Shown here: piece after piece, positions 21,911 to 52,806 of the stretch
Position numbering within the stretch: the first letter of the stretch is position 1
Layout: each line of letters opens with the position of its first letter
Assembly (NCBI GenBank): GCA_037447605.1
Contig: CM074812.1
Location: 3,100,001-3,164,000, forward strand
Length of the DNA: 64,000 bases
From: Zygnema circumcarinatum SAG 698-1b
Lineage: Eukaryota > Plantae > Zygnematophyceae
Direction: 5' to 3'
The notes under the pieces: generated by a model
Told to the model about the DNA's origin: nothing
The model's input: the letters and a program-made list of their open reading frames with translations, nothing else
The model's database searches: none
Program-made: the position numbers and the translations under genes

Positions 21911-22175
21911 GGAGAGGCGACAGAGAAGTAGCAAAGGAGTGGAGGCGGGAGGGCAGAGAGAGAGAGGGAGAGAGAATGAAAGAGAGATAGAGAGAAGAGA
22001 GAGAGCGAGAGGGAGTGAGTGGAGAGGGAGTGAGAGAGAGAGAAAAACAAGCGGAGAGAAGTACAGGGAAACCCATAGAGACAGGAGAGTTGACCGAGGG
22101 GGAAGGTAGAGAGACAAAGTGGAAGAGCGGGAGAGAGAGGGGGAGAGAGAGGGAGAGAGTGGGCGAGAGAGAGGG

Positions 22176-22206
<31 letters not shown>

Positions 22207-23829
22207 GAGGAAGAAATAGGGAGAGAGAGGTAGAGAGGGAGAGAGAGGGGGCGAGAGAGAGGGAGAGAGTGGGGGAGAGAGGGAGAGAGAGAGGGAGAGA
22301 GAGAGGGAGTGAGAGAGGGAGAGAGAGGGAGAGCGAGAGAGAGAGGACGAGAGGTGGGGAGAGAGAGGGAGAGAGAGGAAGAGAGAGAGGGAGAGAGGGA
22401 GAGAGAGAGGGCGATAGAGAGGGGGGGAGAGAGACGGAGAGAGGCCCACCAATGACATATGGTGTGAAGGGGATGTGAATCTGCGTGACTTGAATGAGAG
22501 TGGCGAAGCCCGAGGCAATGAGGGACGCCGCGATGACATCTGTCCTCAAAAAGTACGCAATTAAGAAATTAGTAAAAAAAAAAAAAATAGTATGACGGAA
22601 GCAAAAATGTGAAAGCATCAATTGCGAAGCATGACCAAATTTTCAGGTACAAAAAAAAAAAGCATTAGATAATCTTACATTGCTTTTGGTCTGTGCTGAA
22701 ATTTCCGAAGTACGGTCCGCTGAGAATTAACGGCACAGTGATAATTCCGGCAACCTGAGGGAACATGAAACCCCACGAATTCGATTTTTAGAACTAAAAA
22801 TTAGCGAAAATTTAAAAAAAAATTGTTTATATCAATTAAAGGAAATTGGGGTGATCTGGGAACAACAAGTATATATACTCTTCGGGAAATTTCATATTTT
22901 GAAAATTCAAGAAATTTTCGTGGAGGGGACACATAGAAACAGTTCAGAGTTGTTTGGACGGAAAGAGAGATAAATGCATGGTTGGAAGGAGTGGGGAATG
23001 GAGAGGGGAGGAGGGGAGAGGAGGGAGAGGGAGGGGGAGGAGGGGAGGGAGGAGGCGAGTGGGAGAGGGGAGAGAGGGAGAGCGAGAGAGGAGGGGAGGA
23101 GAGGGCGAGTGGGCGAGGGGAGAGAGCAGAGAGGGAGAGGGAGAGAGGAGGGGAGGGAGGAGGCGAGTGGGAGAGGGGAGGGATCAGAGAGGGAGAGGGA
23201 GAGAGGAGGGGAGGGAGGAGGCGAGTGGGAGAGGGGAGGGAGAAGAGAGGGAAAGAGGAGGGGAGGGAGCAGGCGAGTGGGAGAGAGGAGAGAGAGGCGA
23301 GAGAGGAGAGAGGCAGAGGGGGTAGAGGAGAAAGGGGGGAAGACAAGAGCGAGAGGGAGAGCGAGAGAAGGAGAGGGAGGGGGGAGAGGCGAGTGCGAGA
23401 GGGGGGAGACGAAGGGGGAGCAAGTGTGTGAGAGGGAGAGTGATACAAAGTATATGAGAGAGAGAGAGATCACGAGGGAGTGGGAGTGTGTGAGTGCTAG
23501 CGAGAGCCACAGTGAGAGCAATTGTGTGTGAGAGAGATAAAGAGAGCAATTCTTAGAGAGAGGGAGTGTGTTAGAGAGAAAGAGAGAGAGGGCGAGAGAG
23601 GGAGAGGGAGAGAGAGCGGGAGAGGGAGAGAGATAGAGAGAGAGCGAGTGAGGGACCCTACCATGGCCAGCGCATGCTGCAGCCCCATAACGAATGCCAC
23701 AAATACAGAGATTTTGTCGTCCCTCTTAAAGAGCGGCGGCGCGGGCTTCATTCCTCCCCAAGGCGTGCGGGGAGTGCAGAGGAAGCCCCAATCGTAGTCG
23801 CCGATGATCACATCCTTGAAGAGCCCCAT
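14419..23829 (-). CDS. NAT/NCS2-family uric acid-xanthine permease, fungal UapA/UapC-like. Exons 23829-23662, 22754-22679, 22539-22450, 21626-21576, 19332-19184, 18542-18437, 18193-18132, 17736-17590, 17454-17341, 16677-16550, 16219-16093, 15902-15848, 15432-15208, [probable missing exon(s)], 14552-14419
   Basis: The N-terminus IIGDYDWGFLC...GLQHALAMVAGIITVPL, LRKIFPPVVTGTTVTLIG, LPFGAKQYVGLGF, ECVGDVTATMEAS and the NAT signature AENNGIISLTR are all present. All listed junctions are GT-AG and phase-consistent. The segment expected between SIP and GFRDAL (late TM helices) was not found and probably lies in the gap at 14835-14844. Confidence 0.92.
18559..18845. repeat. Intronic cluster of TGACGTCA palindromes
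   Basis: Seven perfect copies (18559, 18613, 18623, 18714, 18749, 18759, 18813) plus near matches. Confidence 0.8.
19040..19182. repeat. ~15-bp intronic minisatellite (GTAGAACyyTTyCCC-like)
   Basis: About 9-10 degenerate tandem units abutting the donor site of the exon ending at 19184. Confidence 0.8.
19550..21315 (-). repeat. Tandem duplicate of 21326-~23080, carrying second copies of permease exons 2-4 (20986-20911, 20771-20682, 19858-19808)
   Basis: Near-identical sequence at offset 1768, separated by the 10-N gap at 21316-21325. Confidence 0.92.
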
Positions 23830-27157: not shown

Positions 27158-28156
27158 TTATTCTCCGTCTGAGTCCAAGTCGATGACAGGCACCTGTGAA
27201 GCCGGAAGCTTCCTGGAAGGTTCACCCCCTGTTATTAGAGCCGGATTTTGCTCGTTTCCATGTTCTCCACATGCGTTCGATAGAACAGGCGTTCCGAGTG
27301 TCCGTGAAACGGGAACGGGAACTGAAACTGAAACTGAAACGGGGGTGGGACCTGTTGCAAGGAGAGGCCTCGCCTGCTCGCTCGTGTGGCCTCCTCCTGC
27401 TCTCACACTTCTCACAACTCCACCTGAACGTTTCGAGGGTTGGAGTTAATAGCCAGATCGGTGGAGGGAGGGAGGGAGGGAGGGAGAGAGGGCGGGAGGG
27501 GAAGGGGACGAGGGGAGGAGGAGGAGGGGAGGAGGGGTGGAGGGGAGGAGGGGTGGGAGGGAGAGAGGGAGGAGGGAGGGAGAGAGGGAGGGAGGAAGGG
27601 GGATGTGAGGGGATGAGGGGATGAAGGGAGGAGGGGAGGAGGGGTGGGAGGGGAGGAGGGGTGGGAGGGAGGGAGGGAGGGAGAGAGGGAGGGAGGGAAG
27701 GGGGGATGAGGGGATGAGGGGAGGAGGGGAGGAGGGGTGGGAGGGGAGGAGGGGTGGGAGGGAGGGAGGGAGGGAAGAGGGGAGGAGGAAGGGCGAGAGG
27801 GAGGGAGAGAGAAAGAGGGAGGGAAGTTGAGGGAGAGAGGACAAAGGCAGGGAGGGAGAGAACGAAAGGGAGGGGGGTTGAGCGAGGGAGGTTGGCAAAG
27901 GGAGGGAGGCTGGTTGAGGGAGGGACGGACGGCAAGAGTGAGAGAGAGAGAGAAAGGGAGGGAGGTTGAGCGAGGGAAGTTGTTAAAGGGAGGGAGGAAG
28001 GTAGAGGGAGGTCAAGAAAGGAGGGAGGATGACGATGGATGCAGGGAGGGAGGGAGGGATGGAGGGAAGGAGATTGAGGGACGGGCTGAGCAAAGTTGAC
28101 AGAGGTTTAGAGTGGGACTGAGGTTAAGGGAGGGAGGGAGGGAGGGTGGGAGGGAC

Positions 28157-28252
<96 letters not shown>

Positions 28253-31200
28253 TGGGTTTTCAAGGGATTATGGTCTGGATAACTTACCTCCTGCTGCGGG
28301 AGAGCTATCGCGGACTACAGGATGGCCGGTGTGAACTCCAAAAAATTGAGATGTATTGGTTCCGGGAATTCGCACCGGGAGCCGACTCCCCCCCTGAACC
28401 TGCTGTTCCATGCTCACAGTTCCGTTATTCGTTGAGAAATGGAGAGCTCCTATTGGGGCAGAAGTAGTCTCTCCCATTGGACCGTTACTGAAGTGAGAAG
28501 TAGACTGGGATGCAGCGAGATGTAGAGTCTGCAGAGCTGACTGAGAGTGAGAGGAGAGAGAGGTAGAGAGAGAGGGAGAGAGTGGGGAGGAGTGAGGTCG
28601 TAGCATAGGAAGGGGGCTGCGAGTGGTTCGCATTCCGGCAGCCATGGATTGAGCTTGAGCTGCTCCTCCACCAACAGGTCTTCCAGATGAAGGGTGGGAG
28701 AGGGGGGGGTGGAGAGGGAGGGAGGATGGGAGAGGGGGTGAGAGAGAGGGAACAGTAGAGGTAGGAGATGTTCCAAATACTGGATACCCATGGACTATAT
28801 TTACTTGATGCTGAGAATTGGCATTTTGGGGGGGTATGGGAGGGGTAAGAGGAGAAGGTTGGAAGGAGGAGGAGGAGGAGAAGGTTGAATCTCCTCTCAG
28901 AGCAGCTCCTAACTGTGGCGTTCCATGCGTCTGCAGTTCCGTGCTAGACAACAACGAGAACTGCGAAGCTCCATGTGACTGTTGCGGTGGAACTGTCCGT
29001 TGAACAGGCCTTGAATTTCCCTTGTTACGGTTCCGTCTAACGGTATATTTTGTACGGAAAAGCTCTGCAAGGGCCCGATTCTGAAGGAGAATTGCTTTCC
29101 GTTCTTCTAACGGTTTACGGAAAACGGAAAACTGTTTTTCCTTTTCCTGCTGCCACCTGTCAAACTGATTGCTCGCTTCCTCAATACGAGCATCCTCTTG
29201 CGCTATCTGCTGCTGCAGTTCCGTAATTTTCCGTTGCAATTCCTCTTTTACCATATCCGCTTTTTGGATTATTTTGTCCCTTTCCTCGAGCTTCATCGCC
29301 CTTTCCTTGTCCATCTGTGAAAAAAAAAAATTTCGTGGGCTTTTGGGATTTTCAGTTTTTCAGGGTTGTTAGAAATTTGGGGCTTCTAAGAATGTTAAGG
29401 GAAGTGTATTCAAGAACTAAGAAGAAAGGAAGAAAGAAAGAAACCTAAAACATATAATAAGAAGTAAGAGATATCAGAAACAAGTTTAATGATTGACGAC
29501 ATTTTCCGATTCCCCGGGAGGGGGAGGGGGAGGGGGANNNNNNNNNNGGTCCTACCTCCTCTTTGAGTGTTCTCTCCATCAGCCGCTGCTCCTCCTTCAC
29601 CAACCTCTCCTCCACTTCAACCGGATCCAAATTTTGCAATCGCATGTGATGAATGTGTTGAATGAACTGGTTCATTATTAGAATTCTATGGGGGGGTCTC
29701 CTCCTCTCCGGGGTTCTCGCTCTTTCTCCGCCCGTCTCCCGCCCACTCTCAGGCTGCCCTTCCCTCTCCCTCCCCCTCTCCCTCTCATTTTCTCCCACTC
29801 GCTCACTTTCCATCTCCGTTCTGCTCTCCATCTCCCTCTCGCTCTCCGTCAATCTCCCTCCCCCCCCCTCTCCCTCCCTCTCCCTCTCCATTTCTCCGAC
29901 TTGCTCACTTTCCATCTCCGTCCTAGACTCCATCTCCCTCTCGCGCTCCGTCAATCTCTCTCCCTCCCCCTCCCCCGCCCCCTCTCTCTCCCTCCGCCTC
30001 TCCCTCTCCCCCTCCGAATCCTGAATTACGACTGGAGAATTAGATATCAGGGTTTGCTCATTCCCTCCTACTGCCTCCCTCACCTCCCTCTCCGATTCAT
30101 CCTGTCGTCCCTCTCTCTCTCTACACTCTGTCTCTCTTCTCTCACTTTCCCTTCCCACTCCCTCTGCCTCTCCTCCCACTCTTTCTCCCTGCTCCTTTAC
30201 TCGTTTCCTCACGTCCAAAACCATCTGCTTTGCTGCTGAAATAATCTTATTTGATTTTTCCACATTCAAATCTCCTCCCCTTCTCAATGTTCCCAATTCC
30301 TCATTATGAACTTGCTTTAAATTTGCTAACAAAATATTCTGCTCTGAAATTATTTTCTCTTTGCTTTCCTCCAACTCCCTAATACTCCCTCCATTTTGAA
30401 CACCATCAAGGGAAGTAGAGAGTAGAGAGAGAGCTTCCTCCATATCAATCATTAGCTGAGAAACTTCTCTCGTCTGCTCCATCCTCCTTTCCTCAACTAT
30501 CCTCTCCCTCCCTTCTTCCTCCTCCTTACTCTCACCTCTGCCACTAACCAATCCGCTATCAATCCCCTGATTAGCTTGTATTTCTCCCTCTCCTTCACAT
30601 GCATCAATTAGATTCTCCCTCACTATTTCAGGTCTTCCCTCTTCCCTTGTCTCCCTCTCCACTCCCTCTCCCTCTCCCTCTCCTTCTCTCTCTCCCACTC
30701 CCTCTTTCAAAGAGGCTCCTCCTTCACCAATAGAAGGCCCTCTCTCTCCTTCTGCAGAATTCGACTTCAATGTATGTCCCATAGTAGGTCCGACAGGAAT
30801 GGAAGCGGGAACAGAAACGGGCACGGAAATAGGTTCGGAAACAGGTTCGGGAGGATGTTCGGAAACTGCAGCAGTGGAGCTGGGATTCGAACGGAGTTGA
30901 AAATTGGGACAAGGAACAGGCACTGCCAACGGAACAGGAACAGGAATGNNNNNNNNNNGGGAGGGAGAGGGGGAGGGGTCCTACCTCCTCTTTGAGTGTT
31001 CTCTCCATCAGCCGCTGCTCCTCCTTCACCAACCTCTCCTCCACTTCAACCGGATCCAAATTTTGCAATCGCATGTGATGAATGTGTTGAATGAACTGGT
31101 TCATTATTAGAATTCTATGGGGGGGTCTCCTCCTCTCCGGGGTTCTCGCTCTTTCTCCGCCCGTCTCCCGCCCACTCTCAGGCTGCCCTTCCCTCTCCCT

Positions 31201-34200
31201 CCCCCTCTCCCTCTCATTTTCTCCCACTCGCTCACTTTCCATCTCCGTTCTGCTCTCCATCTCCCTCTCGCTCTCCGTCAATCTCCCTCCCCCCCCCTCT
31301 CCCTCCCTCCCTCTCCCTCTCCATTTCTCCGACTTGCTCACTTTCCATCTCCGTCCTAGACTCCATCTCCCTCTCGCGCTCCGTCAATCTCTCTCCCTCC
31401 CCCTCCCCCGCCCCCTCTCTCTCCCTCCGCCTCTCCCTCTCCCCCTCCGAATCCTGAATTACGACTGGAGAATTAGATATCAGGGTTTGCTCATTCCCTC
31501 CTACTGCCTCCCTCACCTCCCTCTCCGATTCATCCTGTCGTCCCTCTCTCTCTCTACACTCTGTCTCTCTTCTCTCACTTTCCCTTCCCACTCCCTCTGC
31601 CTCTCCTCCCACTCTTTCTCCCTGCTCCTTTACTCGTTTCCTCACGTCCAAAACCATCTGCTTTGCTGCTGAAATAATCTTATTTGATTTTTCCACATTC
31701 AAATCTCCTCCCCTTCTCAATGTTCCCAATTCCTCATTATGAACTTGCTTTAAATTTGCTAACAAAATATTCTGCTCTGAAATTATTTTCTCTTTGCTTT
31801 CCTCCAACTCCCTAATACTCCCTCCATTTTGAACACCATCAAGGGAAGTAGAGAGTAGAGAGAGAGCTTCCTCCATATCAATCATTAGCTGAGAAACTTC
31901 TCTCGTCTGCTCCATCCTCCTTTCCTCAACTATCCTCTCCCTCCCTTCTTCCTCCTCCTTACTCTCACCTCTGCCACTAACCAATCCGCTATCAATCCCC
32001 TGATTAGCTTGTATTTCTCCCTCTCCTTCACATGCATCAATTAGATTCTCCCTCACTATTTCAGGTCTTCCCTCTTCCCTTGTCTCCCTCTCCACTCCCT
32101 CTCCCTCTCCCTCTCCTTCTCTCTCTCCCACTCCCTCTTTCAAAGAGGCTCCTCCTTCACCAATAGAAGGCCCTCTCTCTCCTTCTGCAGAATTCGACTT
32201 CAATGTATGTCCCATAGTAGGTCCGACAGGAATGGAAGCGGGAACAGAAACGGGCACGGAAATAGGTTCGGAAACAGGTTCGGGAGGATGTTCGGAAACT
32301 GCAGCAGTGGAGCTGGGATTCGAACGGAGTTGAAAATTGGGACAAGGAACAGGCACTGCCAACGGAACAGGAACAGGAATGGAAACAGAAACAGAGACAG
32401 AAATCGGTTCGGAAACGGGAGCAGGCTCAGAAACAGTACGAGATCAGAGATGGAAACAGGCATGGAAAGAGGTTCGGAAGAGGTGCGGAAGCCGAAGTGG
32501 GTTGGAGGGAAAGGGAAGAAATCGATTCGAGAAGAAGTGAGGGAGAGTAGAGGAGAGTGAGGGAGGGTGAGAGAGTGGGACAGTGGCTGAGAGTGGGGAC
32601 ATGGAAATGGTAGAAAATGCAGAGTCAAGATTTGGAGCAGGCAGGGAAAGGGGCTTACAATTAGGCTCGGAAATAGGCTCGGTTATAGGTTCGGAATTAG
32701 GTTCGGAATTAGGTTCGGAACAAGGTTCGGGAATAGGAACAATATGAGTGTTTTCGGAAAGGCATCCAGAAACAGGCACAGGAACAGGTAGACAGAGAGA
32801 GGGAACGGGAGGAGCTTCGGAGACAGGTTCGGGAAGTAGGGCAGGTCTGGAAACAGGTTCGGAAGGTGAGATAGGTTCGGGAACAGGTTCGAGAGGTGGG
32901 GCAGGTCTGAAAACAGGTTCGGAAGGTGAGATAGGTTCGGGAACAGGTTCGGGAGGTGGGGCAGGTCTGAAAACAGGTTCGGAAGGTGAGATAGGTTCGG
33001 GAACAGGTTCGGCAAGTGGGGCAGGTCTGGAAACAGGTTCGGAAGGTGAGACAGACTTGCGAAAAGTTTCGGGAAGGAGTTTGGGATGTGGAACAGGTAC
33101 GGAGGGAGGTTCGGGAAGAGATTTGGAATTCTTGAAGCAGAGAGCCATAACTTGTTTTTGCAAAGTTCGAATGTTTCCGAGCGTGAATTTGAGCTGCATT
33201 TTGCGTCGTACTAATTCATGCGAAAGTTGGTGGTCCAAATCGTACTTCATGTCAGAGGCAGCCTGCCAACACTGCTCGTTCAATGGAGAGACAGCGAGAG
33301 AGAGAGAGAGAGAGATATATAGAGAAAAGGGTTTTAGAGTTTTAGGGTTTTTAGGGAGAGAGAGGGATTGAGAGAGGGAGCGAGAGAGGTGGGGAGAGAG
33401 AGAGGGGGGAGAGGGGGATGGAGAGAGGGGTGAGAGAGGGAGAGGGAGGAAGAGAGGGAAAGAGGGAGAGGGAGTGAGAGACAAGGGAAGAGGGAGAGAG
33501 GGAGAGAGAGACGGAGGGAGGGAAGCGGGAGAGAGGGGCGAGAGAGAGAAAAAGTAATAATTTAGAAAGGAAAAAAAAAGAAAATAATATCAGATATCAG
33601 TATAAGTGGGAAATTTGAAAAGCGGAAGGACCTCATTGCACTAACAATTGTTAAGGAGAGAGAGANNNNNNNNNNGGATTGGGGAGGGGGGAGGAGGGAG
33701 GGGAGAGAGGGGATGAAGGTGGTGGTAGAGGTGGTTGGGAGGGAGGGAGGGAGGGAGGGAGGGAGGAAGGGAGGGAGGGGAGGAGTAGGGGGTTGGGAGG
33801 ATGGGAGGGAGGGAAGGGTAGGGGAGGGAGGGAGGGAGGGAGTTACCATTGCCAAGGCGATAGCCGGGAGAGCCTGCCGATTTGCAAACTTGTCCTTATC
33901 CCATTTGAGAACTTTTTGAACCAAATAGTTTACTTGCTCCTCCACATGCTTCTGCAAAGAGAAAAAAATAAAATTCAATGACAATTGCATTAGGGAGAGA
34001 GCGGGGAAAGAGCGGGGTAGAGAGGGATAGCGAGAGATGGGGAGAGATGGAGGAAGTGGGAGTGAGGGAGAGATTGAGAGGAAGGAGAGTAGAGAGAGGG
34101 GAAGGAGAGTGGGAGAGAGCGAGAAAGGGAGTGGGAGGTGAGAGGGGACGAGAGAGAGGATCAGAGGGCGGGGGGAAGGGAAGCGTCACAAGAGAGGGGG

Positions 34201-37200
34201 AGAGTGCGAGGAAGGGGGGGTTACACAGGGGAAATGACAGGTGGAAGGAGAGACAGAGAGGGCAAGGAGAGAGATAGGAAGGAGAGGGAGGTGAGAGGGA
34301 GAGAAAGGAACCGCTAGCGAGAAGGATACCAAGGGTGAGTGAGGGGGGAAGAGTGCGAGGAAGTGTAAGATAAGGAGGGGAAGTTAGCGAGGGATTCAGA
34401 GACAGAGGGAGAAAGAGAAAGGGAGACGGAAGGGGAAGGGGGGGCGAGAGAAGGAGAGCGAAAGAGCGAGAGAGAGAGAGAGAGAGAGAAAGCGAGAGAG
34501 AGAGAGCGAGAGAGAGAGAAAGAGAGAGAGAGGGAGTTGTTTTGTTTCGTACCGGTATCTCCAAAGCTTTGTACATTGACTGTAAAACAGGTTCATATTT
34601 CTCCCAACTTTCTTTAAATTTTTTTTCTGAGTCCGATTTTGGAGTGAGAGAGAGAAAGCCGGCAGAGGACGAAATTGGCGATCCGGAGTTTGATTTTTCG
34701 AACAGTTTAGAATTCGGTTTAGTGGCACTATACGGGTGGGAAATTTTTACTCCAATGGGGCTTGAAATAAATTCCAAATCGGAGCCTTGTGGGAGGGAGG
34801 AGGGAGTAGGTAAGGCTAAAGCTTCAGGAAATGAGGATATTTTTGAAACCCCATTCTCTCCCACACCTATCTCCCGCCTGTCGGAGACTCTCTCCCCTCT
34901 CCCTTCCATCACTCCTCTCTCACTCCCATTTTCTGGCCCTTCTTCGACCTCATTTTCGACCCCATATTGCATTACGTTTGCTAATATCACTCCTTCCACT
35001 CCCACTCTCACTCCCACTCCTGCTCCCACTGCCTCTCCCACTCCCTCTCCCACCCCTCCCCTTTCTCCTTTCCCAACTTCCACTATCTCCAGAGATAGCC
35101 TTCTTTCCTTAGCCGGAGCATTCAAATCGTACAATTTTTTCCGTTTTTTCCGTTTCTGATTTTCCGGCTCTGAGTTATCTGTTTGAATCTCTTCCAGTGC
35201 TCCTCCTTCCCCTCCCTCTCCTCTCTCCTCTCCTTCCTCACTCTCATCCTCCTCTCTCTGTCCTTCTCTCCCTCCCCACCTTCCCCCATTCTCCTCTGCC
35301 TCCCTCCCTCTCTCCTTCCGTTTCTCTCCCACCGTCGCTCCCATTTCTGGAAGTCCTCCACTCCCACTCTCCCAGCTCTCCTCACTCGCTGAAGTATCAT
35401 CTATGGCTACTCTCTCTTCCACCCTACTATTAACAGTATCAAGCTTTGAAGAATCTTTCCCTCCTCCTCCCTCCCTTCTCTCACGGAACATTGTTGCCCA
35501 GAACTCATTTGGGTCATGCATTTCAATAGACCTTTCTTGTGAAAACTTCTCCTCCAAAAAGATCTCTATCTGCCCTCTCCCTCCCTCTCTCCCTCCCTCC
35601 CTCCCTCCCTCTCCCGCTCCTTCTCCCATTTCCAGCAACATAAGGACCTTTTCCGGGGTGTATCGATATCGTCTTCGAAGATAAACAGGAAGTCCCCATT
35701 GTAGCAAAGCTTGACAGATTTCTACGGAGCTAAAATCGTTGAATTTCAGTTCTCCGTTTAACGGATTCAACGCATTTTGCACGATATCGCTTCCGCAATT
35801 CTTTCGGGAACTCGAAGTCGGTACTTCTTGAAATCGAGCCATTAGCATTGCACATTCTTCCATACTTCTGCTCGTGAAGAATCGGTACACCGCAACTTCC
35901 TTGTCCTTTGCATCCGGAAAAACTAGGGAGAGGGCCTGTATTCGTTTCAGGAAAAAGAAAAAAGAAAAAAAGCAAATAGACGTAGTAAATGTTAAAAAGT
36001 AGATAATTTAACGAATGTCTTCAATTAAAATGAAGACATTTAGAAAAAATCCAGCGATGTAGGGCTCATGTGAGAGGAAATAACAAAATAAAAACATGTT
36101 TTTATTGCAAATGAAGATGCTGGGAAGCTAACAGAGACTGAGAGGACGAGGACGAGAGAGGGAGAGGGAGAGGGAGAGAGAGGAGGGGAAGCGTGAGAGA
36201 GGGAGAGGATGAGGGCGAGAGAACAAGAGCAGGAGCGCGGGATGGAGATGGAAGAGGTGGGAACAGGGAGGAGAGGCAATTGGAGAGCGAAGAGATACAG
36301 AGTACGAGAGAGGAAGACAGAGGGAGAGAGGCGACGAGGAAGAGAGTGTCAGCTGTACGTTTTGCCTCACTTGACTCACCTTCTCTTATCTCAATTCACT
36401 CCCTTCTCTTGCAACTTTCCCTATTTCACGTATCTATTCCTGTCTATACGGATCTTTCCTTCCCTCTTTCCCCTCTCCCTCCCTCCCTGCTCTTTCCCTC
36501 TCCGCTCCCTCTCCGTCTCCCTCCTCTCGTTCTCCTTCTCCTCTCCGTCTATGTCCATCTCCTCTCCCTCTCCTCGCCCTCTCCTCTCCCTCTCCTGTCC
36601 CTCCCCACTTTCTCTCCCTATACCTCTCCGTCTCCCTCTCTCTCCTCTCCTCTCCCAATCCCTCTCCTGTCCTTCTCCTCTCACATTCCTGCCCCTCTCC
36701 TCTTCCTCGCCTCTCCCTCTCCTCGCCCTCTCCTCTCCCTCTCCTCTCCCTCTCCACTTTCTCTCCCTATACCTCTCCGTCTCCCTCCCCTTCTTCTCCT
36801 CTCCCAATCCCTCTCCTGTCCTTCTCCTCTCACACTCCTGCCCCTCTCCTCTTCCTCGCCTCTCCCTCTCCTTGCCTCTCCTCTCCCTCTCCTCTCCCTC
36901 TCCTTAGTCGTTCCCTAAACCTCTCCGTCTCCCTCTCCTTCCTCTCCTCTCCCAATCCCTCTCCTGTCCTTCTCCTCTCCCACCCTCTCCTCTTCCTCGC
37001 CTCTCCCTCTCCCTCTCCCTGTACCCAAGTCGAAAGCAGAGATGCAGAGGCTTACCTCCACATCCTTTGACGGGTTCCATGCGCTGTCGAAAAGAAAAAC
37101 TGTTCGAAATTTCGTTAAATTAAGCCCCAAATTGCAAGCCTTTGTGGGCAAAAGGAGAGCCGCCAAATTTTCATTCTTTCCTACCCCCGAAATTTTTTCA

Positions 37201-40200
37201 ATTAAATCTTTGTTTTCGTAGTAAGCTCTCCCTCCTTTTTGCCTTATTCTCTTTACGGACCCTCCTTCAAAATTTCTCTCCAAAAAACTTTCCAACAAAT
37301 CAAGCATTCCGGGCACCTGCAAAGGAGTGAAAAAGTAAACAATAAGAAAATGAAGTAATAGAAGAATTCAAACATAGAAGCATCGAAAAAGATTCATCAA
37401 AGAGAAGATTGAATAAAGAGTTGACAAAAAAAAAAAAATAACGTTATGTGGGAAGGTAGGGGTGGTTAGACCCTGCAAATATTGAGATATCGAAGATATT
37501 TCAAGAGGAGGCTCCCTCCCTCCTCCCTTCCCCTTTCCCCCCCTCCATCAAATTCCCTCCCCTTCCCTATCTCCCCACTCCTCGCTTCCCTCCTCCCTCT
37601 CTCTACCTCCCCACTACTTTCGTCCCCTCCTTTCTGCTTCTCTTCTATCATCACCTCATTCCCCCAACCCCTCTCACTCCAATCCTCACTCCCTCTCTCT
37701 CTCTTTCTCCCCTCCGCTTTCACCCTCCTTTCCCCTCCCGCTCTCTATGTCTCTCGTCCGCTCCCTCTCTCTCTCCCCTCTCCTATCGTACCCTCGTTCC
37801 CCCACCCTTTCCACTCCCCTATCTCACTCTCTCCCTCCTCCCTCCCCCACAATTCCGCTCCCTCAATCTCTCCCTCCATCCCCCCTCCCCCTNNNNNNNN
37901 NNCTCCCTCTCCCTCTCCCTCTCCCACTCACATGCGAGAGTACCGCCACCGGCCCCTCCGCCCTCCTGAGCCCCGCGAGCACCTTCCCCAGCAGGAGCAG
38001 CTTCCCGCTTGCCGCCGCCATCCGCCGGAGACCGCGCTCGGCGAACCGCTCCGAGTGGACCCTTTGCGGCTTCTCATTTTTTAAAGTGGGTCGTTCGACA
38101 AGGTAGGGGTGGTCGCAGCACTGGAGGAAGGAGGAAAGGGAACATGGGGAAGCGTGAGGGAGAGAGAGAGGAAGAGAGAAAGAAGGGGGGGAGAGAGAGG
38201 GAGGAAGGGATGGAGGGGGTGGAGGCAGAGGGGAATGGGGGAAGGGGGGAAGGGGGGAGAGGGGGGAGGGAAGGGGGAGAGGGGGGGGNNNNNNNNNNGG
38301 AAGGGAGGGAGGGAGGGAGGGAGTGAGGGGAAGTTGGGGGAGAGGGAGAGAGGGAGGGGAGGGAGGGAGAGGGGGGTAGAGTGGGGGAGAGGAGGGGAGA
38401 GAAAGGGATAGTGGGGGGGGGGAGAGGAGGAGAAAGAGGGGTGAAATTGGGAGGGCGAGAGGGGGAGGGGGGAAAAGAAGAAGAAAGAGAGAGAGGGAAA
38501 GCGAGAGAAAGAAATGGGGAAGCGGGGAGGAGAGGACGAGTGGGAGCGGGAGGGAAAAAGCGGGAGGGAAAAAGTGGGAGAAAAGGTAAGGGAGGGGGGA
38601 TAGGGAGAGAGGAGGGAGAGCGAGAGAGAGAGAGAGAGAGATGGGGAGAGAGCGAGAGAGAGATTGCCTTTCTGAGTTGCCGAACAACATGTGCGAGCGT
38701 GACACCTGAGTTGTCACTCCATTGTCCTGAAGCCAAGAGGACTTCATAGCGCTTCAAAACTCCCCTGTAAGGCAGAACCGAACTTTGGATTACCACAGGA
38801 GGGAGGGGGAGGGGTGGAAGAGGGCGGGAGAGAGGCGGGAGGGGAGAGGGTGAGGGGAGAAGGAAGAGAGGGGCAGAAAGGGAGAGGGGGAAAGGAGAGG
38901 AGAAGAGAGGAGGGGAGAGCGAGAGGGGGAGGGGAGTGGAGGAAGAGAAGGGCAGAACGGGAGAGGGTGAGGGGAGAAGGAAGAGAGGGGCAGAACGGGA
39001 GAGGGTGAGGGGAGAAGGAAGAGAGGGGCAGAACGGGAGAGGGTGAGGGGAGGAAGAGAGGGGCAGAACGGGAGAGGGTGAGGGGAGAAGGAAGAGAGGG
39101 GCAGAACGGGAGAGGGTGAGGGGAGAAGGAAGAGAGGGGCAGTACGGGAGAGGGTGAGGGGAGAAGGAAGAGAGGGGCAGTACGGGAGAGGGTGAGGGGA
39201 GAAGGAAGAGAGGGGCAGAACGGGAGAGGGTGAGGGGAGAAGGAAGAGAGGGGCAGAACGGGAGAGGGTGAGGGGAGAAGGAAGGGAGAGGGTAAGGGGA
39301 GAAGGAAGAGAGGGGCAGAACGGGAGAGGGTGAGGGGAGAAGGAAGAGAGGGGCAGAACGGGAGAGGGTGACGGGACAAGGAAGAGAGGGGCAGAAAGGG
39401 AGAGGGGAAGGGAAAGTGAAGGGAAACGGAAAGGATTGGGAAACGGGCAGCGGGCAGCGGGCAGTGGGCAGACGAATAAAAAGTTTGTTGACGAGTCGGC
39501 GGATAGGAGGAGGCGAGGGAGGGGGGAGGGAGGGAGAGGAGACGAGAAAAAGAGAGCGAATGAAATTGAAGGAGAGTGGGGGGGGCGGTGGATCCAACGC
39601 ACAGTGGGAAGTGGAGAGAGAGAGAGAGAGAGAGTAAAGTCAGCCCTTACCTATAATGTCTGCATTGGGCTGCACTCATATCTACTGGGACCCAAATTTC
39701 TCTCCTCCTCGGGAGAGGAGGGAGAATTTTGTCCTTTTCTCGACAAAGCGCATACTCCTTCAGTATCTCCCTCCCCTCTCCCACTCCTCCCGTTTCTAAT
39801 TTTTTGTCCGAAAAGAGATATTTCTGCAAGTCAGATTCCTCTAGTGTTGTTTCCTGACACAAAAAGAAATGGTTAGTACTGGTGAAGGACGATCAGAAAA
39901 AGAAAAAAAGGAAAAAACAAGTCAATTTCGAATGTGAAATTGAAAGTAAATAAATGCCGTAAGATGAAGAAAGTGACTATTTTCGTTTCATGTGGAAGAG
40001 AGAGATGAAGGAAGGAGAGAGAGGAGATGGCGGAGAGGAAAGAAAAACGAGGACATGGCAGGAGAGGTAAGGAGATAAAGGAGAGGTTAGGAGAGAACGG
40101 AGATGACGAAAGAGTAAAGGAGAGAGTGGCGGGAGAGGATAGGAGAGCAAGGAAGAGGAAGGGAGAGGAAAGGAGTGAGAGGAAGAGGAAGGGAAATAAC

Positions 40201-41880
40201 TTGGTGTGGGAAACAACAGATATCGGGAGAGGAAGGAAGTTAGGGAGAGCATTGTAATAAAGAAGAGGGAGAGGGAGTGGGAGAGGGAGAGGGGGCAGAG
40301 GACATAATGGAGGAGAAGGAGAGGGAACAGTAGAGGGAAGGAGGACGAAGGATAGGGAGTGGGAACGGAAGCGGGTAAGAGGGAGAGGGAACGGGAGTGG
40401 GTGCGAGAGGGGAAGCGGGAGAGGGTGAAGGCGAGGGAGGGAGGGAGGGAGGGAGGGAGGGAGGGGGGGAAAGTAGTTAACAATATTTGAAGGCAATTGC
40501 TTGCTTACTGGCAATTTCTGTCGATAAATGACAAGCCGAAAGTTGGTCGTCAGTTTGGCCAAAAGTTGACGGAGGGAATTCTTTGCCTTGTTGTTGCCGT
40601 CCGTTTCAGTTTCAGTTTCCGATTCAGTTTCAGTCGTGAGAGGAAGATCCAACGCCATCACCTCCCATTCAAGAGAACTTAAAAATGCCGATTCCTGAAA
40701 AGGGCAAAAAAAAATTAAAATTTTCAGGTATTTTAAATTTTAGGTAACTCAAAATTCCACATAGTTTAGTTAAAACTAGTCAACTAGTTAGCTTTTGGTG
40801 TGTTTGAGTATTAGGTGTTTACGCTATGCTAGGGAGTGAGGAGAGAGAGAGAGTGGGGACGGGGTGGGAGAGGGATGGGAGTGGGGTCTGAGAGGAGTGG
40901 GAGAAGGGTGGAAGGTGGGTGGGAGAGGGGTCGGAGAGAGTTGGAAGAGTGGGAGAGGGGTGGGAGAGGGGTGGGAGAGGGGTGGGAGAGGGGTGGGAGN
41001 NNNNNNNNNGTGGGAGAGGGGTGGGAGAGGGGTGGGAGAGGGGTGGGAGAGGGGTGGGAGTGGGGTCTGAGAGGAGTGGGAGAAGGGTGGCAGGTGGGTG
41101 GGAGAGGGGTGAAAGAGACAAATGTTACAAGGAGAGAACAAGGAAGCATCAACCTTAGAAATTTCACCTTTGTTTCCTTTCTTTTTTTGAATCATATTCT
41201 CACCTCCATCAACACCTGAAAAGTAGTGACCACGATCTGCACTCTCATTGGTCGGTGGTCTAAATGGAATTCCCATCGTTTAATTAAATTTCGATTTTCC
41301 GAATTTCCGCGGAGGCCCACTACATGTAAATTCGGGCACCATGAAGAAAATCCGTTCAGCCAATGGGAGGCCTTGGAGGGGGGAGCGATAATTAAAACCG
41401 GTTTTGTAGTGAGAAATTTTTCAAAAAGGGTACAGAAAAAGCTGATGGTTGTGGTGGATTTTCCCTGCGAGAACAAAAGAAGCAAAATGATAAAGAAGCG
41501 GTTAGTTAAATTCGTCGATTGCTCAACATTTCTGTACTCTGTCTGAACGTGTGTTTGTGAGAGAGAGCGAGGGGTGGAGAAAGGCAGAGGGAGAGAAAGG
41601 GAGAGAGAGGGAGAGAGAGGGAGAGAACTGGGGGGAGGGAGGACACAAAGATTCAAACCATTAAGACTCAATGAGTGCGTTTGATGATAAGTCCTTGAGT
41701 ACACACATTTGCGGTACTGTGCGTTTGTGTGTGAGAGAGAGAGAGAGGGGGAGAGAGCGAGAGAGGGAATGGGGGAAGAGGAGAAAGAGTGCGAGAGTGG
41801 GAGTGAGGGAGACACAGACAAGAGAGACTGTGAGAGAAAGCGGGAGGAAGAGAGAAAGGGAGAAAGTGAGAGAGAGAGAG

Positions 41881-41919
<39 letters not shown>

Positions 41920-44900
41920 GAGAAGGTGAAAGATTCCCACACTCACCAGACCAGCTTCATCTCCGAGAATAGCATCCTTGCGTTCAGACCAGCGCTTGAG
42001 CAGCCAATCAGAGCCCGCCAGCTGGTGGGGTCTCAAAATATCCAGAAACCGTTCACATTGCAAAGTCGGGCCGGGCAGAGAAACCCTTTTTCGTCGCTCC
42101 ATCTTTTTACGTGTTGAAAAGAAAAAGGGAGGAAAAAACGGGAGGCAGGTTAGACTAAAAAAACTACCAGTTTCTCGATGTTTTTAGGGCTTTTTGGGAT
42201 TTTAGGGTTTCAAGGATGAAACTCAGTAAAGGTTAAGACAGTCAGAGGGAAGGAGGGAGGGAGGGAGGGAGGGAGGGAGGGAGGGAGGGAGGGANNNNNN
42301 NNNNGGGAGGGAGGGAGAAGAAGAGTCCGAGTGAGAGAGAGAGAGAGAGAGAGAGACTTCGCCGGCTGTGAACCAACCTTACCTCCTCCTTCCAGCTCGC
42401 CTGCGTGTGCTTCCGCATCTCCTCTCCCGCTGCAAAGGCCGAGCAGAGCTCCCTCCCCTCCTTGTCCTTTAGCGGCCCCGGGAAGGCGGGCTCCCACGAA
42501 CAGTGGCGGTACGGCAGGCCCCGCCACTTGACCAGCCTGCATGGGCATGCATGAGGATGGAGGCCATGTCATCACCATTGCTGCACATACATCATTCTAC
42601 ATCGTTGGTTCCGTCCCTCTCTCCCTCCCTCCCTCCCTCCCTCGATCCCTTCCTCCCTCCCTCCCTCCCTCCCCTCGATCCCTCCCTCCATCTCTCCCTC
42701 CCTCCTTCCCTCCCTCCCTCCCTCGATCCCTCCATCCCTCCCTCCCTCGATCCCTCCCTCCTCCTCCCTCCTCCTCCTCCCTCCTCCCTCCTCCTCCCTC
42801 TCCCTCCCTCCTCCTCCCTCCTCTCCCTCCCTCCTCCTCCCTCCTCCCTCGATCCCTCCCTCCTCCTCCTCCTCCCTCTCTTCCTCCCTCCTCCTCCTCC
42901 CTCCTCCCTCGATCCCTCCTCCTCTCTCCCTCCTCCCTCGATCCCTTCCTCCCTCCTCCCTCCTCCCTCGATCCCTCCCTCCCTCCCTCCCTCCCTCCCT
43001 CCTTCCCTCTCTCCCTCCTCATGCATCATCTGCTCCAGCATCATCATTTCAAACGTCGACATCAATTCTGAAATTAGCTCCTTCCCTCCCTCCATCCCTT
43101 TCACAACATGTCATGTGTTTTGACATCGTCCGCTGCAACACGACTTCTCCTCCCAACATGACCTTGCTAAGAACACTTCCAAAAAGCACCATTTCTGACA
43201 TAATCTTTCCCAAATCATTTGTTCCAACATCATTGTCATTTTTTACAAACACCAACATATTTCTCTCCCTCTCTCTCGAGATCATCAATCGATCTTCACC
43301 TAATTCAGCCCATGTATAACATGGGAGGGAGGGAGGGAGGGAGGGAGGGAGGGAGGGAGTCGAGAACAGAGAGATGATCAACAATGCAATGATCACATGT
43401 GACGGCAACACCTTTTTTGATCTGTTTTCCGTTTCCCGTTCCAAACCATTTTACAATCCATTCTAACTATATTTTACTTCATTATGCAACCAGTTACTAG
43501 AAAAGTAAAATAGAAAGAATAACATGAGAAAGGAAAATGGAAAAGGAGGGGCGATGTTTTTGGTGCGTTGCCGAATTTCCAACATAATGCACTGACAAAT
43601 AAAGAAAAAGGTAAAAAGAAATAGGGTAGGATTCCGTCGATGAAATGGGCCAATCTAGGTCTGCCACGTCAGCTTTTTGATTGGACGACACGTCACAGGT
43701 ACTCTCAATGGAATGCACACCAACAGTCAAATTTCATAAACCGTCCCTTTTCCCTCCCTCCATCCTGTCCGCCCATCCCTCCCTCCCTCCCTCCCTCCCT
43801 CCCTCCCTCCCTCCCTCACTCCCTCCCTCCCTCCCTCCATCACTCCCTCCCTCCCTTCCTCACTCCCTCCCTCCCTCCCTCCCTCCCTCCCTCACTCCCT
43901 CCCTCCCTCCCTCCCTCCCTCCCTCCCTCCCTCCCTCCCTTCCTCCCTCACTCCCTCCTTCCTCAGCCCTCCTCTCTCACTCTCGTTGTATCACACTAGA
44001 TAGGACTCCAAGGCTACACTAAAAGTAAACTTTGAATGGGAAAAAAAAAATCCAAAAAATCAAAGATGTCACAAACATCCCTCAACTATTATCACCTCCT
44101 GTAACAAACATCACAATGTCATGTTCATCATCATGAACGTGAAATTTTTTTCTTGCAAATGTTCTCACATGCATTCGAAGAGATGAAGAAAACCCAAAAA
44201 AAAAAAACGTTGAGGAGTTTCGTAGGGATTTTGCTTTGAAAAAATCCCCAAAAACCCATATCGATATATACCGAAAAAGGACCCTTCTGTTTCGTGAAGA
44301 CTATTGGGAGAAGGAAAAGGACGGAAAGCGAATGATTCAAATTTTCAAAATTCAAAATTTCCTTCTCTAGCAGCTGGATAAAGGATGTACGTTTGATCCT
44401 TACAAAAGAACGGAAATAATAACTTTGTCGAAAATCAATTTGATTTCGCTTGCTTTTTTTCACCTGTTCTTCAACACCCACAACATGTAACATCTGTCCC
44501 CCTCTTATCTCATGAATAGCTCACAGCCAAACGCATCAAAGCCTAAGAAACGGACATCGAATGTTCGTCTAGTCCTTCTCGCCTCTCGCCCTCCCTCCCT
44601 CCTTCCCCTCCCTCTCCCACCCTCCTTCCCTCCCTCCCTCCTCTCTTCCTCCCTCCCTCCCTCCTTCACTTCCTCTCCCTCCCTCCCTCACTTCCTCTCC
44701 CTCCCTCCCTCACTTCCTCTTCCTCCCTCCCTCCCTCCATCCCTCCATCCCTCCCTCCCTTCCTCCCTCCCTCTCTCCCTCCCCCTCCCCACCTCTCTTC
44801 CTCCCTCCCTCCCTCACTTCCTCTCCCTCCCTCCCTCCCTCCCTCTCTCCCTCCCNNNNNNNNNNAGGGGGGGAAGGGAAGGGGGGGTAAAGGGGTGGGA

Positions 44901-47652
44901 GGGGAGAAAAGAGGGAGAGGGTAAATACAGAGAGGCACGAGTGGCAGAAAAGAGTGGTGAGAAAGAGGGAGGGGACGAGAGAGCAAGAAGCCGAAAGGCA
45001 AGGGTAAGAGTGCAAGAGAGGGAAGACAGAGAATGGACAGGAATGAAGGCAGAGAGAGAGCGAAAGCAAGGAGGACAAAGGAGAAGGAGAGGGAGGAGAG
45101 AAGAGTGAGAGAGAGCGAAAGGAGGACAGAGAAAGGAAAAGAGAGGGAGGCGATGAGAGAGGAAGGGAGGGACGAGGAGAGAAAAGGAGAGCAAAGGGAG
45201 GGAAGGAGGGAGATGAAGGGGAGTGAATAGAACATTAAAAATCTAAGAAATTGTAGAAAAGAAAATGCAGATAAGAAGAAGAAGTAGGATGCATATCTGT
45301 ATAATAATAATAATTAAAAACAGGAACTTACATTCTTCTTGAATGCAGCCAGCTTCTCGTGGTAGTGCTTCTCCAGCCACTCCTCTCCCACCCATGAGTT
45401 GTATGCATGAGCCATCCCCTCCCACTTCACAAAGTACTCCCACTCCACATCTGCCTCCTCCTCCACCTTCCTATTGGGTCTGCTTTTTTGACCTTTCTCC
45501 TGCCCAGACTGACCCAAATTGTTCAAACGCCGCAATTTGCTCTTCTTTCCGTTCTTTTTTTCTCTTTTTCGGTCTGCCCGATCCCGCCTATTGACCCTTT
45601 TTTGGACCCGTCCGAGCCTCTGACTGAGTCCGTTACCTCCGTTTCCGTTACCGTTTCCGTTACCGTTTCCGTTTTCCTTCATTCCATTGTCCTCGGACCC
45701 GTCAGAGAAAAAACTTTTCTCCAATATCTCCACCGTTGCCACTAACGGAACGTCCTCCGTTACAAGATCAGCAGTTTCTTCATCTTCTTCAAACACAACT
45801 GAAAGACATGGAACGTCGGTTGTGTCTTCATCATTGTCAGTCTCCCCTACTTGCAGTTTCTTCGTCCCCTCTCCTCTCTCTCCCACAGCTCTCCCTCCAT
45901 CTGTCGTCATAAACGACTTCCAAAAGTTGCCCTTCTCTAACCCTGAATGATCCTCAGTTCGATAAACTTCTGCCATGTTGAAAGCATCAACAGCCATCCT
46001 CTCTCCAGCTTCACTCCCACTCCTACCACGTGCATCTCGTTCCAAAATATCTCTCTCGCCCTCCCCATCATCCTCTCTCTCCTCCCTCCCTCCCTCTCCT
46101 CCAGTCCTTTGACCCACATCCGCATCGGCCTGTTCATCACGCCTTTTCAACACACGTTCTCTCTCCTCCCCATCAATCTCCTCCTCTCCCTCTCTCCCTC
46201 CCGCTGCCCCAACAACTTCCGGAATTCCAGCATACTTTCTCCCTCTGCCACTCCCATCTTGAACTCCCCCATTTCCTGCAGAATGGCTGAAAGTTGTTCT
46301 ACCCCATCTCACTCTCTCTCTGCCTCTCCCTCCTCTCACAACATTCCTTACTCCCCATATAGAATTTACTCCTTCACTTACCACTTCGGGTCCTTTATTC
46401 GCTCTCTTATGTAGACATGCAGGGCAAAACCAATTCCCTGCAGGGAGATTTTCCAAAGGAGGATACAAAGCCTGAAGATGATATGTGGTACTACAATCCT
46501 TGGCACTGCATATCCTGCAAAAATTTCGAACCAAAACATGCAAAGAATCCAAGCAATGTAAATAATGAAGGGGACGAGGAAAGGGAGGNNNNNNNNNNTG
46601 AGGGGAGGGAGAGGGAGAGGGGAGGGGAGGGGAGGGATGGACACGTAAGAAAAATCCTTAGAAATTTCAACCACTGCAGTAAGCATGAAGACCACACGAA
46701 ACCTGAACATCCTCCCTCTTGTTAACGGAAGTGCACATACTACTTACAAAATAGACTGAGGCTCCCTGCTTTGAAATCTATAGCGCTTCACTGCAGCCGT
46801 TCCATCTCTCTCCTTCTCTACCTCGTCTCGTTCTCTTTTTTCTACCTGTGCAGAGATTGGGAGATCCAAAAATCCTTCCCAATTTTCGCCTTCCTCTTCC
46901 TCAAATTCACTCCACTGCAGACTCTCCAAATCATCTTCTGTGATGAGCTTTGACGGATCAATCTCCGCTACCCGTTCCGTTAGCCGCTCCTTTCCCCTCC
47001 CATGGAACAGTTGGGGCCTGATGTCATCTCCCCCAATGCCAAACCCAATGGCATCTTCCTCCTCGTCTTCCTCCTCCTCTTTCTCCTCCTTCTCCTCCTC
47101 CTCCTCCTTCTCCTCCTCCTCCTCCTTCTCCTCCTTCTCTTCCTCCTCCTCCTTCTCCTTTTCGTCCTCGTCCTCCTTCTCCTCCTTCTCTTCCTCCTCC
47201 TCCTCCTCCTCCTCCTCCTCCTCCTTCTCTTCCTCCTCCTCCCCCTCCTCATCACTTGACTCTAGGGATCCGGCTACTTCTGTTAAATTGTTCAAGTTGA
47301 AAGAACCATTCCTTCGAACACTCCTTCCTGTTTGCTCTATGATAAGTTCCGTACCTTTTATTCCAGCAAATTTAAGCCTCGATTCCGTTCCGTTAAACTG
47401 CTCTGCTGTTTCATCGATCGCTGTTGGAGAGAGGTCTTCCATTTCTTCCTTGTTGAGGTCCACCTCCATTTCGTCTGATATATATCCTTGAACCAAATCA
47501 TCCTCAGTCACCTCTCTCTCCTCTCGCTCCTCTCCTCCCTTAAGCTCTCCATTCTTCACCAATCGCCTCTTTCGAACGGGACTAACGATAGTCAATTCCT
47601 CTCCTGCTCGTTTCTTTCTTTTGTTCGATTCCACCATCTTCCTTGCGTCCAT
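27158..47652 (-). CDS. MOM1: MOM1-like (CHD3-derived) protein: acidic N-terminus, degenerate PHD, two chromodomains, degenerate SNF2 lobes, CMM2-like coiled coil, C-terminal SIM. Exons 47652-46748, 46514-45332, [missing], 42536-42383, 42102-41947, 41464-41204, 40694-40509, 39853-39651, 38764-38668, 38120-37932, 37316-37056, 35935-34553, 33951-33847, 33271-~30985 (frame errors, partly duplicated at 30948-29556), 29314-28288, 27423-27158
   Basis: PHD-like ICSAKDCSTTYHLQALYPPL...WFCPAC. Chromodomains EYFVKWEGMAHAYNSWV and LVKWRGLPYRHCSWE. SNF2-like LRPHQLAG...ILGDEAGLGKS, LRKCCDHPYL, ASGKLLLLGKVL, FDSAWNP and VYRFFTSRSMEE. MOM1-type ALLQWG, IALAMCWQAAS...DHQLS, EKEKQF...LLQNRALAELFRTK and terminal VIDLDSDGE. 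Splice phases are consistent except across the missing exon. The start codon is tentative. Confidence 0.85.
29548..30948 (-). repeat. Tandem duplicate of 30977-32370 (3' part of the large MOM1-like exon)
   Basis: Near-identical at offset ~1430 and bounded on both sides by 10-N gaps (29538-29547, 30949-30958). The copies differ by a 4-nt indel in a C/T run. Confidence 0.92.
32830..33050 (-). repeat. Coding 60-bp tandem repeat (20-aa PEPVPEPISPSEPVFRPAPP-type units)
   Basis: Three to four units lie in frame within the MOM1-like exon. Confidence 0.85.
38955..39400. repeat. 38-bp intronic minisatellite (GGGAGAGGGTGAGGGGAGAAGGAAGAGAGGGGCAGAAC)
   Basis: About 11 near-perfect tandem copies. Confidence 0.85.
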
Positions 47653-52005: not shown

Positions 52006-52806
52006 TCAGGTATGAGAGGGGGCCAACCAGAGTGATTGGCTATACAGACTCAGATTGGGGCGGTGATGTAGACATTGTGTCATCTTCAGTGTCTCACTTA
52101 ACCCCATGGAGGTGAGCAATTTTGCCTTGCTAACACCCATAATACGCAAGTATATATTCTGCTGACCCTTAATTGGGTGAGAACACAAAGAAAGGAGAGC
52201 TTGTCCTACACACTGCGGCCTATGCGGACATGATACACGGACGGAAAGAGCAGTGCCAGAGGAGTTGCCGCCGTTGACATTGGCAGGGAGGAATGGCAGG
52301 GGATGCGAATGAGGATCACTCTGGTTCACAGGGAGCCTACGCAAGGCCGCTGCAATCTGTGCGATACGGGCTTGAGCACCCTCCTCTGATTTGATGGGGG
52401 ATTCAGACCAAGCCGGTTGCAATGCTGCGGCAATCGGCGCAGTGCGTGCGCGGGCAGCCAGATCGGACTCGGCCCCTAAGGCGTTTGTCAAGGAAGGGGA
52501 CTCCATAGGATGCAGATGGATCGGCGGACGTTGCAGGATGGTATAAGAGGGTGAAGGAGGTGGATGAGGGCGAAAGGGGGGAGGAGTTCTCAATGGTGTG
52601 TGAGTAGCCGGAAGCATGTCCATGAAAGTGATCTCTGCAGGAGAGTTCCCTGCAGCTGCATCCTTCCCCTTTCGGGCTCTCTCACTGGAGAGTCTCCGCA
52701 TGCATACACGGGCATCATGTCCTGTAATTTGGCAGAAAGTGCAGGTCCATGGCCCACAGCGCAGCCTCGGATTATGATTCGTGCCACAGGCAAGACAAAC
52801 CCCCAT
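52006..52806 (-). CDS. Gag-like zinc-knuckle ORF, probably a retroelement remnant
   Basis: CTFCQITGHDARVC is a CX2CX4HX4C knuckle, preceded by CLACGTNHNPRLRC. The remainder is low complexity and not recognised. Confidence 0.55.
   Translation of the reverse strand: MGVCLACGTNHNPRLRCGPWTCTFCQITGHDARVCMRRLSSERARKGKDAAAGNSPAEITFMDMLPATHTPLRTPPPFRPHPPPSPSYTILQRPPIHLHPMESPSLTNALGAESDLAARARTAPIAAALQPAWSESPIKSEEGAQARIAQIAAALRRLPVNQSDPHSHPLPFLPANVNGGNSSGTALSVRVSCPHRPQCVGQALLSLCSHPIKGQQNIYLRIMGVSKAKLLTSMGLSETLKMTQCLHHRPNLSLYSQSLWLAPSHT

Follow-up and report, generated by a model that had tools for sequence, protein, structure and literature searches.

A probable MOM-branch gene on a CHD core with degenerate ATPase motifs in a 64-kb window from Zygnema circumcarinatum

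The DNA considered here (the window) is a stretch of 64,000 nucleotides from contig CM074812.1 of Zygnema circumcarinatum SAG 698-1b (assembly GCA_037447605.1, positions 3,100,001 to 3,164,000). Between 47652 and 27158 it carries a long spliced gene on the minus strand, in which a core of the CHD type is joined to motifs resembling CMM1, CMM2 and CMM3 of the silencing factor MOM1. We conclude that the locus is probably one intact, transcribed gene of the MOM branch (CHD subfamily II). A single MOM1-type gene had been proposed in an earlier note on this DNA, and our analysis agrees with it: CMM1, a CMM2-like coiled coil and a CMM3-like motif follow the CHD core in that order. The strings quoted in that note are all present on the minus strand.

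Exon borders were modelled from open frames and splice consensus. From 43299 down to 27158, 15 exons join into one frame of 2,102 codons without a stop; the acceptors are AG throughout, and the donors are GT in 14 cases and GC in one (38667). Two upstream exons (47652-46748 and 46514-45332) supply a further 696 codons, and the whole protein has at least ~2,800 residues. The first exon (46748-47652) is open throughout, has GTAAGT as its donor (46747) and encodes an acidic N-terminal region with basic patches of the KRKKR type. Its start codon is a presumed one, and a further in-frame ATG lies at 47721.

The second exon (45332-46514) encodes a PHD remnant, an acidic spacer and the first half of chromodomain 1, as indicated by Pfam matches to PHD and Chromo. 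The PHD remnant (~46346-46504) scores 17.4 bits against Pfam PHD, which is under the cut-off, and is 41.5% identical to the PHD region of grass MOM1 over 53 residues (E 4e-11). It corresponds to the back half of the finger: the exon begins with ICSAKDC, there is no first Cys pair, and Ala replaces the Cys after the His. The segment called PHD-like in the earlier note is thus only half a finger. A spacer of ~300 acidic and Gly-rich residues, inside the same exon, separates SIWGVR on the side of the PHD remnant from EWEYFVKW of chromodomain 1, the first half of which (~45383-45466) scores 25.2 bits against Pfam Chromo.

Chromodomain 2 begins in a short exon at 43257-43299, whose donor (GTTGGT) is weak; the sole phase-compatible junction yields NM|LVKWRGLPY. 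Its core, LVKWRGLPYRHCSWEP, is encoded at 42383-42536 and scores 30.1 bits against Pfam Chromo (42383-42535, E 4.6e-7). A separate chromodomain-like string, LEWIVKWFGTG, is found at 43434-43466 on the minus strand, in the modelled intron just upstream of the short exon. Grass MOM1 has a matching VEWLVKWKGLG (21 bits), and the string in the window could be either a relic or an exon used alternatively.

The SNF2 ATPase follows. Lobe 1 starts at 41947-42102 (LRPHQL...ILGDEAGL, Pfam SNF2-rel 11.7 bits), where the first half of motif I is encoded, and continues at 41204-41464 with the GKS of the P-loop and motif Ia (Pfam SNF2-rel_dom 38.6 bits; 36.5 bits against CHD1 in the PDB). Motif I, which is split by the intron between these two exons, is intact (GLGKS). 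The next exon (40509-40694), read from its translation and a published SNF2 alignment, holds degenerate motifs II and III and a TE-repeat insertion. In motif II, LDLP stands in place of DEAH, with the Walker B glutamate gone, and in motif III, IYRQKLP stands in place of TGTPLQN. A linker exon (39651-39853) is translated to a C-terminal end EIWVPVDMS, comparable to EYWVP... in land-plant MOM. It is followed by an exon ending in ...QLRK (38668-38764), where the intron has the same position as in grass MOM1 (LRK|CCDHPY), and by one encoding CCDHPYLV...ASGKLLLL (37932-38120). The latter is matched at 33-38% identity by two grass MOM1 contigs (L001 and L002), again with shared intron positions. Lobe 2, with motifs IV-V (PTKACNLGLNL and DSAWNP), lies at 37056-37316 (Helicase_C 23.6 bits; 34.4 bits against CHD4). 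The large exon at 34553-35935 opens with a degenerate motif VI (EALSLVFPDAK), both arginines being gone, and goes on through a post-helicase region with ALLQWG (35687-35704), an acidic and Gly-rich region and a nuclear localization signal-like KRKKRKK to the start of CMM1 (...YKALEIP). The idea that an exon with motif VI is missing was rejected, because the degenerate motif sits at the start of this exon.

The gene thus has both tandem chromodomains and a two-lobed SNF2 domain, as expected of a CHD-type core. Among solved structures, lobe 1 is nearest to CHD1 and lobe 2 to human CHD4. Degenerate helicase motifs are expected of a MOM protein, and are found here for motifs II, III and VI; motif I is kept, unlike in land-plant MOM. 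We infer that the ATPase motor is dead and would not hydrolyze ATP. The motifs lost here are not those lost in land plants, which points to separate inactivation of the motor in the two groups. As a separate observation, the apparent GC donor of the QLRK exon (38660-38668, minus strand) reads AAG|GCAATC; grass MOM1 uses GT at the identical position.

Land-plant sequences for comparison were collected starting from the CCDHPYLV exon. A metagenome scan with this exon gave the two grass contigs, and one of them, used as the query of a homologue search, gave 31 MOM fragments, through which a grass MOM1 transcript of 7.7 kb, spliced in part, was fetched (L003). Genomic MOM loci were fetched from Ranunculus, potato (L005), Sesamum and taro (within L004-L007). 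A word-indexed homologue search with exons of the window gave no match, a search limited by its length window and by the few shared words, and exact look-ups of the open reading frames of the window and of the L001 product gave no record. By tblastn, the matches between the model and L003 are collinear, running from the ATPase over ALLQWG/SLLSWG and the two CMM1 halves to the terminal helix. Grass MOM1 also has three of the ATPase introns at the same positions (...LK|E..., LRK|CCDHPY and LSQ|...). In the potato locus (~15018-16474), the MOM-like gene has lobe 2 and a CMM2-like helix in the 10 kb available downstream; tblastn gave no CMM1 match in those 10 kb, and this may be a CMM1-less paralogue.

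CMM1 is spread over three exons. It starts at the end of the large exon described above, continues in an exon of 105 nucleotides (33847-33951), and is completed by the CWQAAS... segment (33128-33271) of the exon at 32659-33271, after which Pro/Glu/Val/Ser tandem repeats follow. The string IALAM|CWQAAS quoted in the earlier note is formed across a GT-AG intron (33847 | 33271). PF25029 (MOM1) is the sole family match on the CWQAAS exon (19.6 bits, E 8.6e-4), and its score falls under the 27-bit cut-off because CMM1 is split and just one of its three exons was scored. In grass MOM1, PF25029 lies ~240 residues past Helicase_C, where CMM1 has been described. A CMM1 profile built from the grass, Ranunculus and Sesamum sequences gave one match in the spliced protein; it spans 78 residues and scores 26.8 bits (E 2e-10 for one target). 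The best of 2,000 composition-preserving shuffles reached 3.9 bits. The gene structure is shared as well. The middle of CMM1 is a 105-nucleotide phase-0 exon in Ranunculus, Sesamum and the window, with the same length, phase and borders and with both flanking introns in common. The exon before it ends in ...LP in Ranunculus (...YKALEIP in the window), and the exon after it opens with TGTTGG (Cys-Trp) in grass, Ranunculus and Sesamum (CWQAAS in the window). Look-alikes of the CMM1 exon in the ESM Atlas were generic or chance matches only. On the profile match and the shared exon structure, we regard the homology of CMM1 as established.

The CMM2-like coiled coil is encoded at 28288-29314, in an exon consisting of a long helix, with the CMM2-like core at 29045-29185, followed by a Ser/Pro-rich tail. 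The helix ending LLQNRALAELFRTKY, to which the earlier note had pointed, is present in this exon (29314-28288), and a match to CMM2 was found there that is weak and non-random. When compared with grass MOM1 (L003) by tblastn, the terminal helix scored 29.3 bits, with KAILLQNRALAELFRTKY aligned to GKVLLNQSLADDFRVKF; eudicots have ...MNKILAEAFRSK there. A four-species CMM2 profile has its best match of the whole protein at the terminal helix, with 11.1 bits, or 14.7 bits for the exon alone; E is 1.8e-5 for one target. The real score was reached by none of 2,000 local shuffles and by none of 5,000 shuffles that preserved the heptad register, and the terminal helix also came out on top when the 64 kb of the window were scanned in six frames. 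The segment is predicted as one helix of 90 residues, with a predicted local distance difference test (pLDDT) of 90.5. A Foldseek search with the single-helix model gave no match, and look-alikes of the terminal helix in the ESM Atlas were again generic or chance matches. We count the terminal helix as a real but distant CMM2.

The last exon (27158-27423) is reached from a phase-1 donor AG|GTAAGT, joined to the first AG past the pyrimidine tract. It encodes VIDLDSD (27167-27187), followed by GE and the stop codon (27158). The model thus ends in VPVIDLDSDGE, and grass MOM1 ends in VDVVCLSDDEPEEH. The likeness between VIDLDSDGE*, VVCLSDDEPEEH* of grass MOM1 and VVCLS, the SUMO-interaction motif of Arabidopsis MOM1 (AtMOM1), is short, and it depends on the acceptor chosen for the last exon. 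VIDLDSD resembles a CMM3-like C-terminal SUMO-interaction motif.

Between CMM1 and the terminal helix lies an acidic, coiled-coil exon (30977-32357), which is frameshifted on the main contig by a 4-nucleotide insertion at 31299-31302. It is preceded in the window by a block (29548-30948) that holds an in-frame copy of the same exon at 29556-30922, and whose edges are exactly two assembly gaps. The two blocks (29548-30948 and 30977-32381) are identical at 1401 of 1401 positions with no mismatch, and differ by one 4-nucleotide indel at 31299-31302, in a GA-rich run. The small contig holds one complete exon including its splice sites. A true exon duplication as the source of this tandem 1.4-kb repeat was rejected. 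The block at 29548-30948 is almost certainly an assembly artefact, and the gene should hold the acidic exon once.

The gene contains six gaps (29538-47, 30949-58, 33666-75, 37893-902, 38289-98 and 41000-09). None of them breaks the frame, each being within a low-complexity intron or at the edge of the redundant contig. Seven RNA-type runs, which come from three studies, cover 100% of the exon with the terminal helix (28295-29314), and one of the seven covers 44% of 33896-37322, which is approximately the share of exons there. These data bear on the suggestion that the locus is not one working gene, and is either a decaying pseudogene or a dead CHD gene and a coiled-coil neighbor joined on paper. 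The frameshift in one copy of the acidic exon, the vestigial PHD, the lost catalytic motifs and the modelled link from 45332 to 43299 would be consistent with this. However, a pseudogene would not be expected to keep 2,102 codons free of stops across 15 exons, the large exon at 34553-35935 physically links motif VI to the start of CMM1, and from end to end the order of elements and the introns agree with those of land-plant MOM1. Expression is seen for the 3' exon, and the frameshifted copy, which adjoins an assembly gap, is paired with an intact one. We consider a pseudogene or a pair of genes very improbable.

Similar redundancy is seen in the neighboring UapA-like permease gene, where 19558-21315 repeats as 21326-23085 (1,760 nucleotides, 99.9% identity), with an exon duplicated. 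The repeat flanks a gap of 10 N (21316-21325), and probably represents unmerged assembly redundancy, as in the MOM-type gene. If both blocks are read in this way, the MOM-type gene should carry its acidic exon once. The window has 19 gaps in 64 kb, nearly all in CT- or GA-rich, microsatellite-like intron sequence. The assembly mixes gaps of 10 N with gaps of 100 N, as would fit a zygnematophyte assembly. It has ~50% G+C, and its introns are largely CT- or GA-rich low-complexity sequence. In the introns of the MOM-type gene the sense strand is nearly pure polypyrimidine or polypurine, which produces a strong alternating GC/AT skew. At 52006-52806 on the minus strand there is an intronless open reading frame of 266 codons, close to the start of which Cys and His residues cluster much as in a zinc knuckle. 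It has no record as a called gene, and could be a gag-like remnant left by a mobile element.

A MOM protein can be defined as a CHD protein with at least CMM1, and MOM is nested in PKR1 (Trujillo et al., 2022, PMC9113485). By this published working definition the gene is a genuine member of the MOM family, because it is a CHD that carries CMM1. Three features look less derived and ancestral: the P-loop is kept, the lobes look canonical, and the spacer of ~300 residues is like that of PKR1.

The same features could be read differently, namely as those of an algal gene of the PKR1/CHR4 lineage, or of a PKR1/MOM-type gene from before the duplication, the CMM motifs being ancestral to both and later lost in PKR1. 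The reported nesting of MOM in PKR1 is compatible with this, as is the disordered spacer of ~300 residues between PHD and chromodomain in PKR1, which is as found here and unlike grass MOM1. The lobes are also as near to canonical CHDs as to MOM. On the other hand, PKR1 has DUF1087 and presumably a working ATPase, whereas here the catalytic motifs are dead, and exon-wise Pfam scans (E<=0.1-10) gave no match to DUF1087 or CHDCT. In addition, the published definition makes any CHD with at least CMM1 a MOM. We therefore regard an origin in the PKR1 lineage or before the duplication as unlikely, and prefer to assign the gene to the MOM branch.

Several observations weigh against this assignment. 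The CMM2 match is weak, and lies below pairwise detection against the Arabidopsis sequence. The CMM2 sequence of AtMOM1 is in the PDB, named as entry 3VEM, and a PDB sequence search with three cuts of the helix gave no match to it (E<=10). A phmmer search with the coiled-coil exon against 1.84 billion representatives gave no match, itself included. The earlier note had named the lack of a significant CMM2 match as grounds for giving up the proposal; a profile match exists, although it is weak. Against CHD1 and CHD4 the lobes reach scores that equal or exceed those against angiosperm MOM, and a tree of SNF2 sequences only might miss the MOM clade for this gene. With CHD1 and CHD4 at least as near to the lobes by overall score as angiosperm MOM is, such a tree may be indecisive; these canonical-looking scores fit a less derived ATPase. 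Two parts of the gene model are also provisional: the link from the second exon to chromodomain 2, through one or more small exons placed between 45332 and 43299, and the acceptor of the last exon. Finally, the function of the whole protein is assigned by analogy.

This function might be as follows. A protein unable to hydrolyze ATP would act as a scaffold, as Arabidopsis MOM1 does. Its CMM2-like helix would dimerize, and would dock partners of the PIAL type (SUMO-ligase-like) and of the MORC type. Placement on chromatin could be aided by the chromodomains and possibly also by the P-loop, if this is a relic that binds nucleotide, and the C-terminal motif could bind SUMO. The outcome would be that repeats are transcriptionally silenced. 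Silencing through dimerization of CMM2 and binding of PIAL and MORC is known for Arabidopsis alone.

The origin of MOM1 was placed at the vascular plants by Caikovski et al. (2008, PMC2507757), who found that MOM of poplar and rice has lost none of the helicase motifs and still has its PHD and chromodomains. In a later survey, most MOM homologues had a PHD, tandem chromodomains and a full-length ATPase, Arabidopsis being a derived exception; MOM was found in one liverwort, five lycophytes and six ferns and in no streptophyte alga, and its origin was placed probably early in the embryophytes (Trujillo et al., 2022, PMC9113485). The argument that the whole CHD3 chassis marks the gene as an intermediate between CHD3 and MOM1 is weak, because most land-plant MOM proteins keep this chassis (PMC9113485, PMC2507757). 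Literature searches that combined MOM1 with algal terms turned up no description of MOM from an alga. The novelty is thus in the algal host and not in the CHD3 chassis, as the published surveys have no MOM from a streptophyte alga. If the host is an alga, the arrangement of CMM1, CMM2 and CMM3 on a CHD core predates land plants, which is a modest but real revision.

It may be, and we suggest this tentatively, that the MOM module arose on a CHD core with a working ATPase in the ancestor of zygnematophyte-type algae and land plants, and that the motor was later killed independently. The alga would then have lost Walker B and motifs III and VI and kept the P-loop, and land plants would have lost the P-loop and kept D[DE]xQ. 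If this is true, MOM-type, methylation-independent silencing would be an algal invention and not one of land plants or vascular plants. Few plant silencers leave DNA methylation largely unchanged when they act, and MOM1 is one of them. An algal member with three CMM modules would match the reported appearance of the partner PIAL in zygnematophytes, PIAL, which binds CMM2, having been reported from Mesotaenium and Spirogloea. The destruction of different ATPase motifs in the two groups would provide a natural contrast, helping to show which parts of the dead motor still matter, and the algal CMM2 would offer a tractable test of whether it can replace that of Arabidopsis.

Compared with known systems, the gene shares its domain chassis with CHD3/4/Mi-2 and PICKLE. 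These differ in being active remodellers with motifs I-VI intact and with CHDCT/DUF1087/DUF1086 tails. With PKR1/CHR4, the clade from which MOM is thought to be derived, it shares the PHD, the tandem chromodomains, the ATPase and the long disordered spacer between PHD and chromodomain. PKR1 has DUF1087 and lacks CMM motifs, whereas the window gene has no DUF1087 match, has CMM1-3 (CMM2 and CMM3 in the qualified sense given above) and has dead catalytic motifs. Arabidopsis MOM1 (2,001 residues) has CMM1, CMM2 and CMM3 in the same order and a nuclear localization signal upstream of the coiled coil, and its ATPase is likewise not needed or not able to work; it no longer has SNF2 lobe 1, the chromodomains or the PHD, all of which the window gene keeps. 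Other land-plant MOM proteins (for example rice OsMOM1, poplar PtMOM1 and the grass transcript L003) have the same order of PHD, two chromodomains, degenerate ATPase and CMM1, and downstream of these a long variable region, the CMM2 coiled coil, a Ser/Pro-rich tail and a C-terminal SUMO-interaction motif, for which VIDLDSD is the candidate in the window gene. Five intron positions are shared, including those of the 105-nucleotide CMM1 exon, as are the WVP, CCDHPYLV and LLxWG residues. The differences are that the ATPase is only ~20-27% identical, that the window gene has half a PHD finger and a spacer of ~300 residues before chromodomain 1, that GLGKS of the P-loop is kept here and lost in land-plant MOM (DDQE...), and that Walker B reads LDLP here and D[DE]CQ in land-plant MOM.

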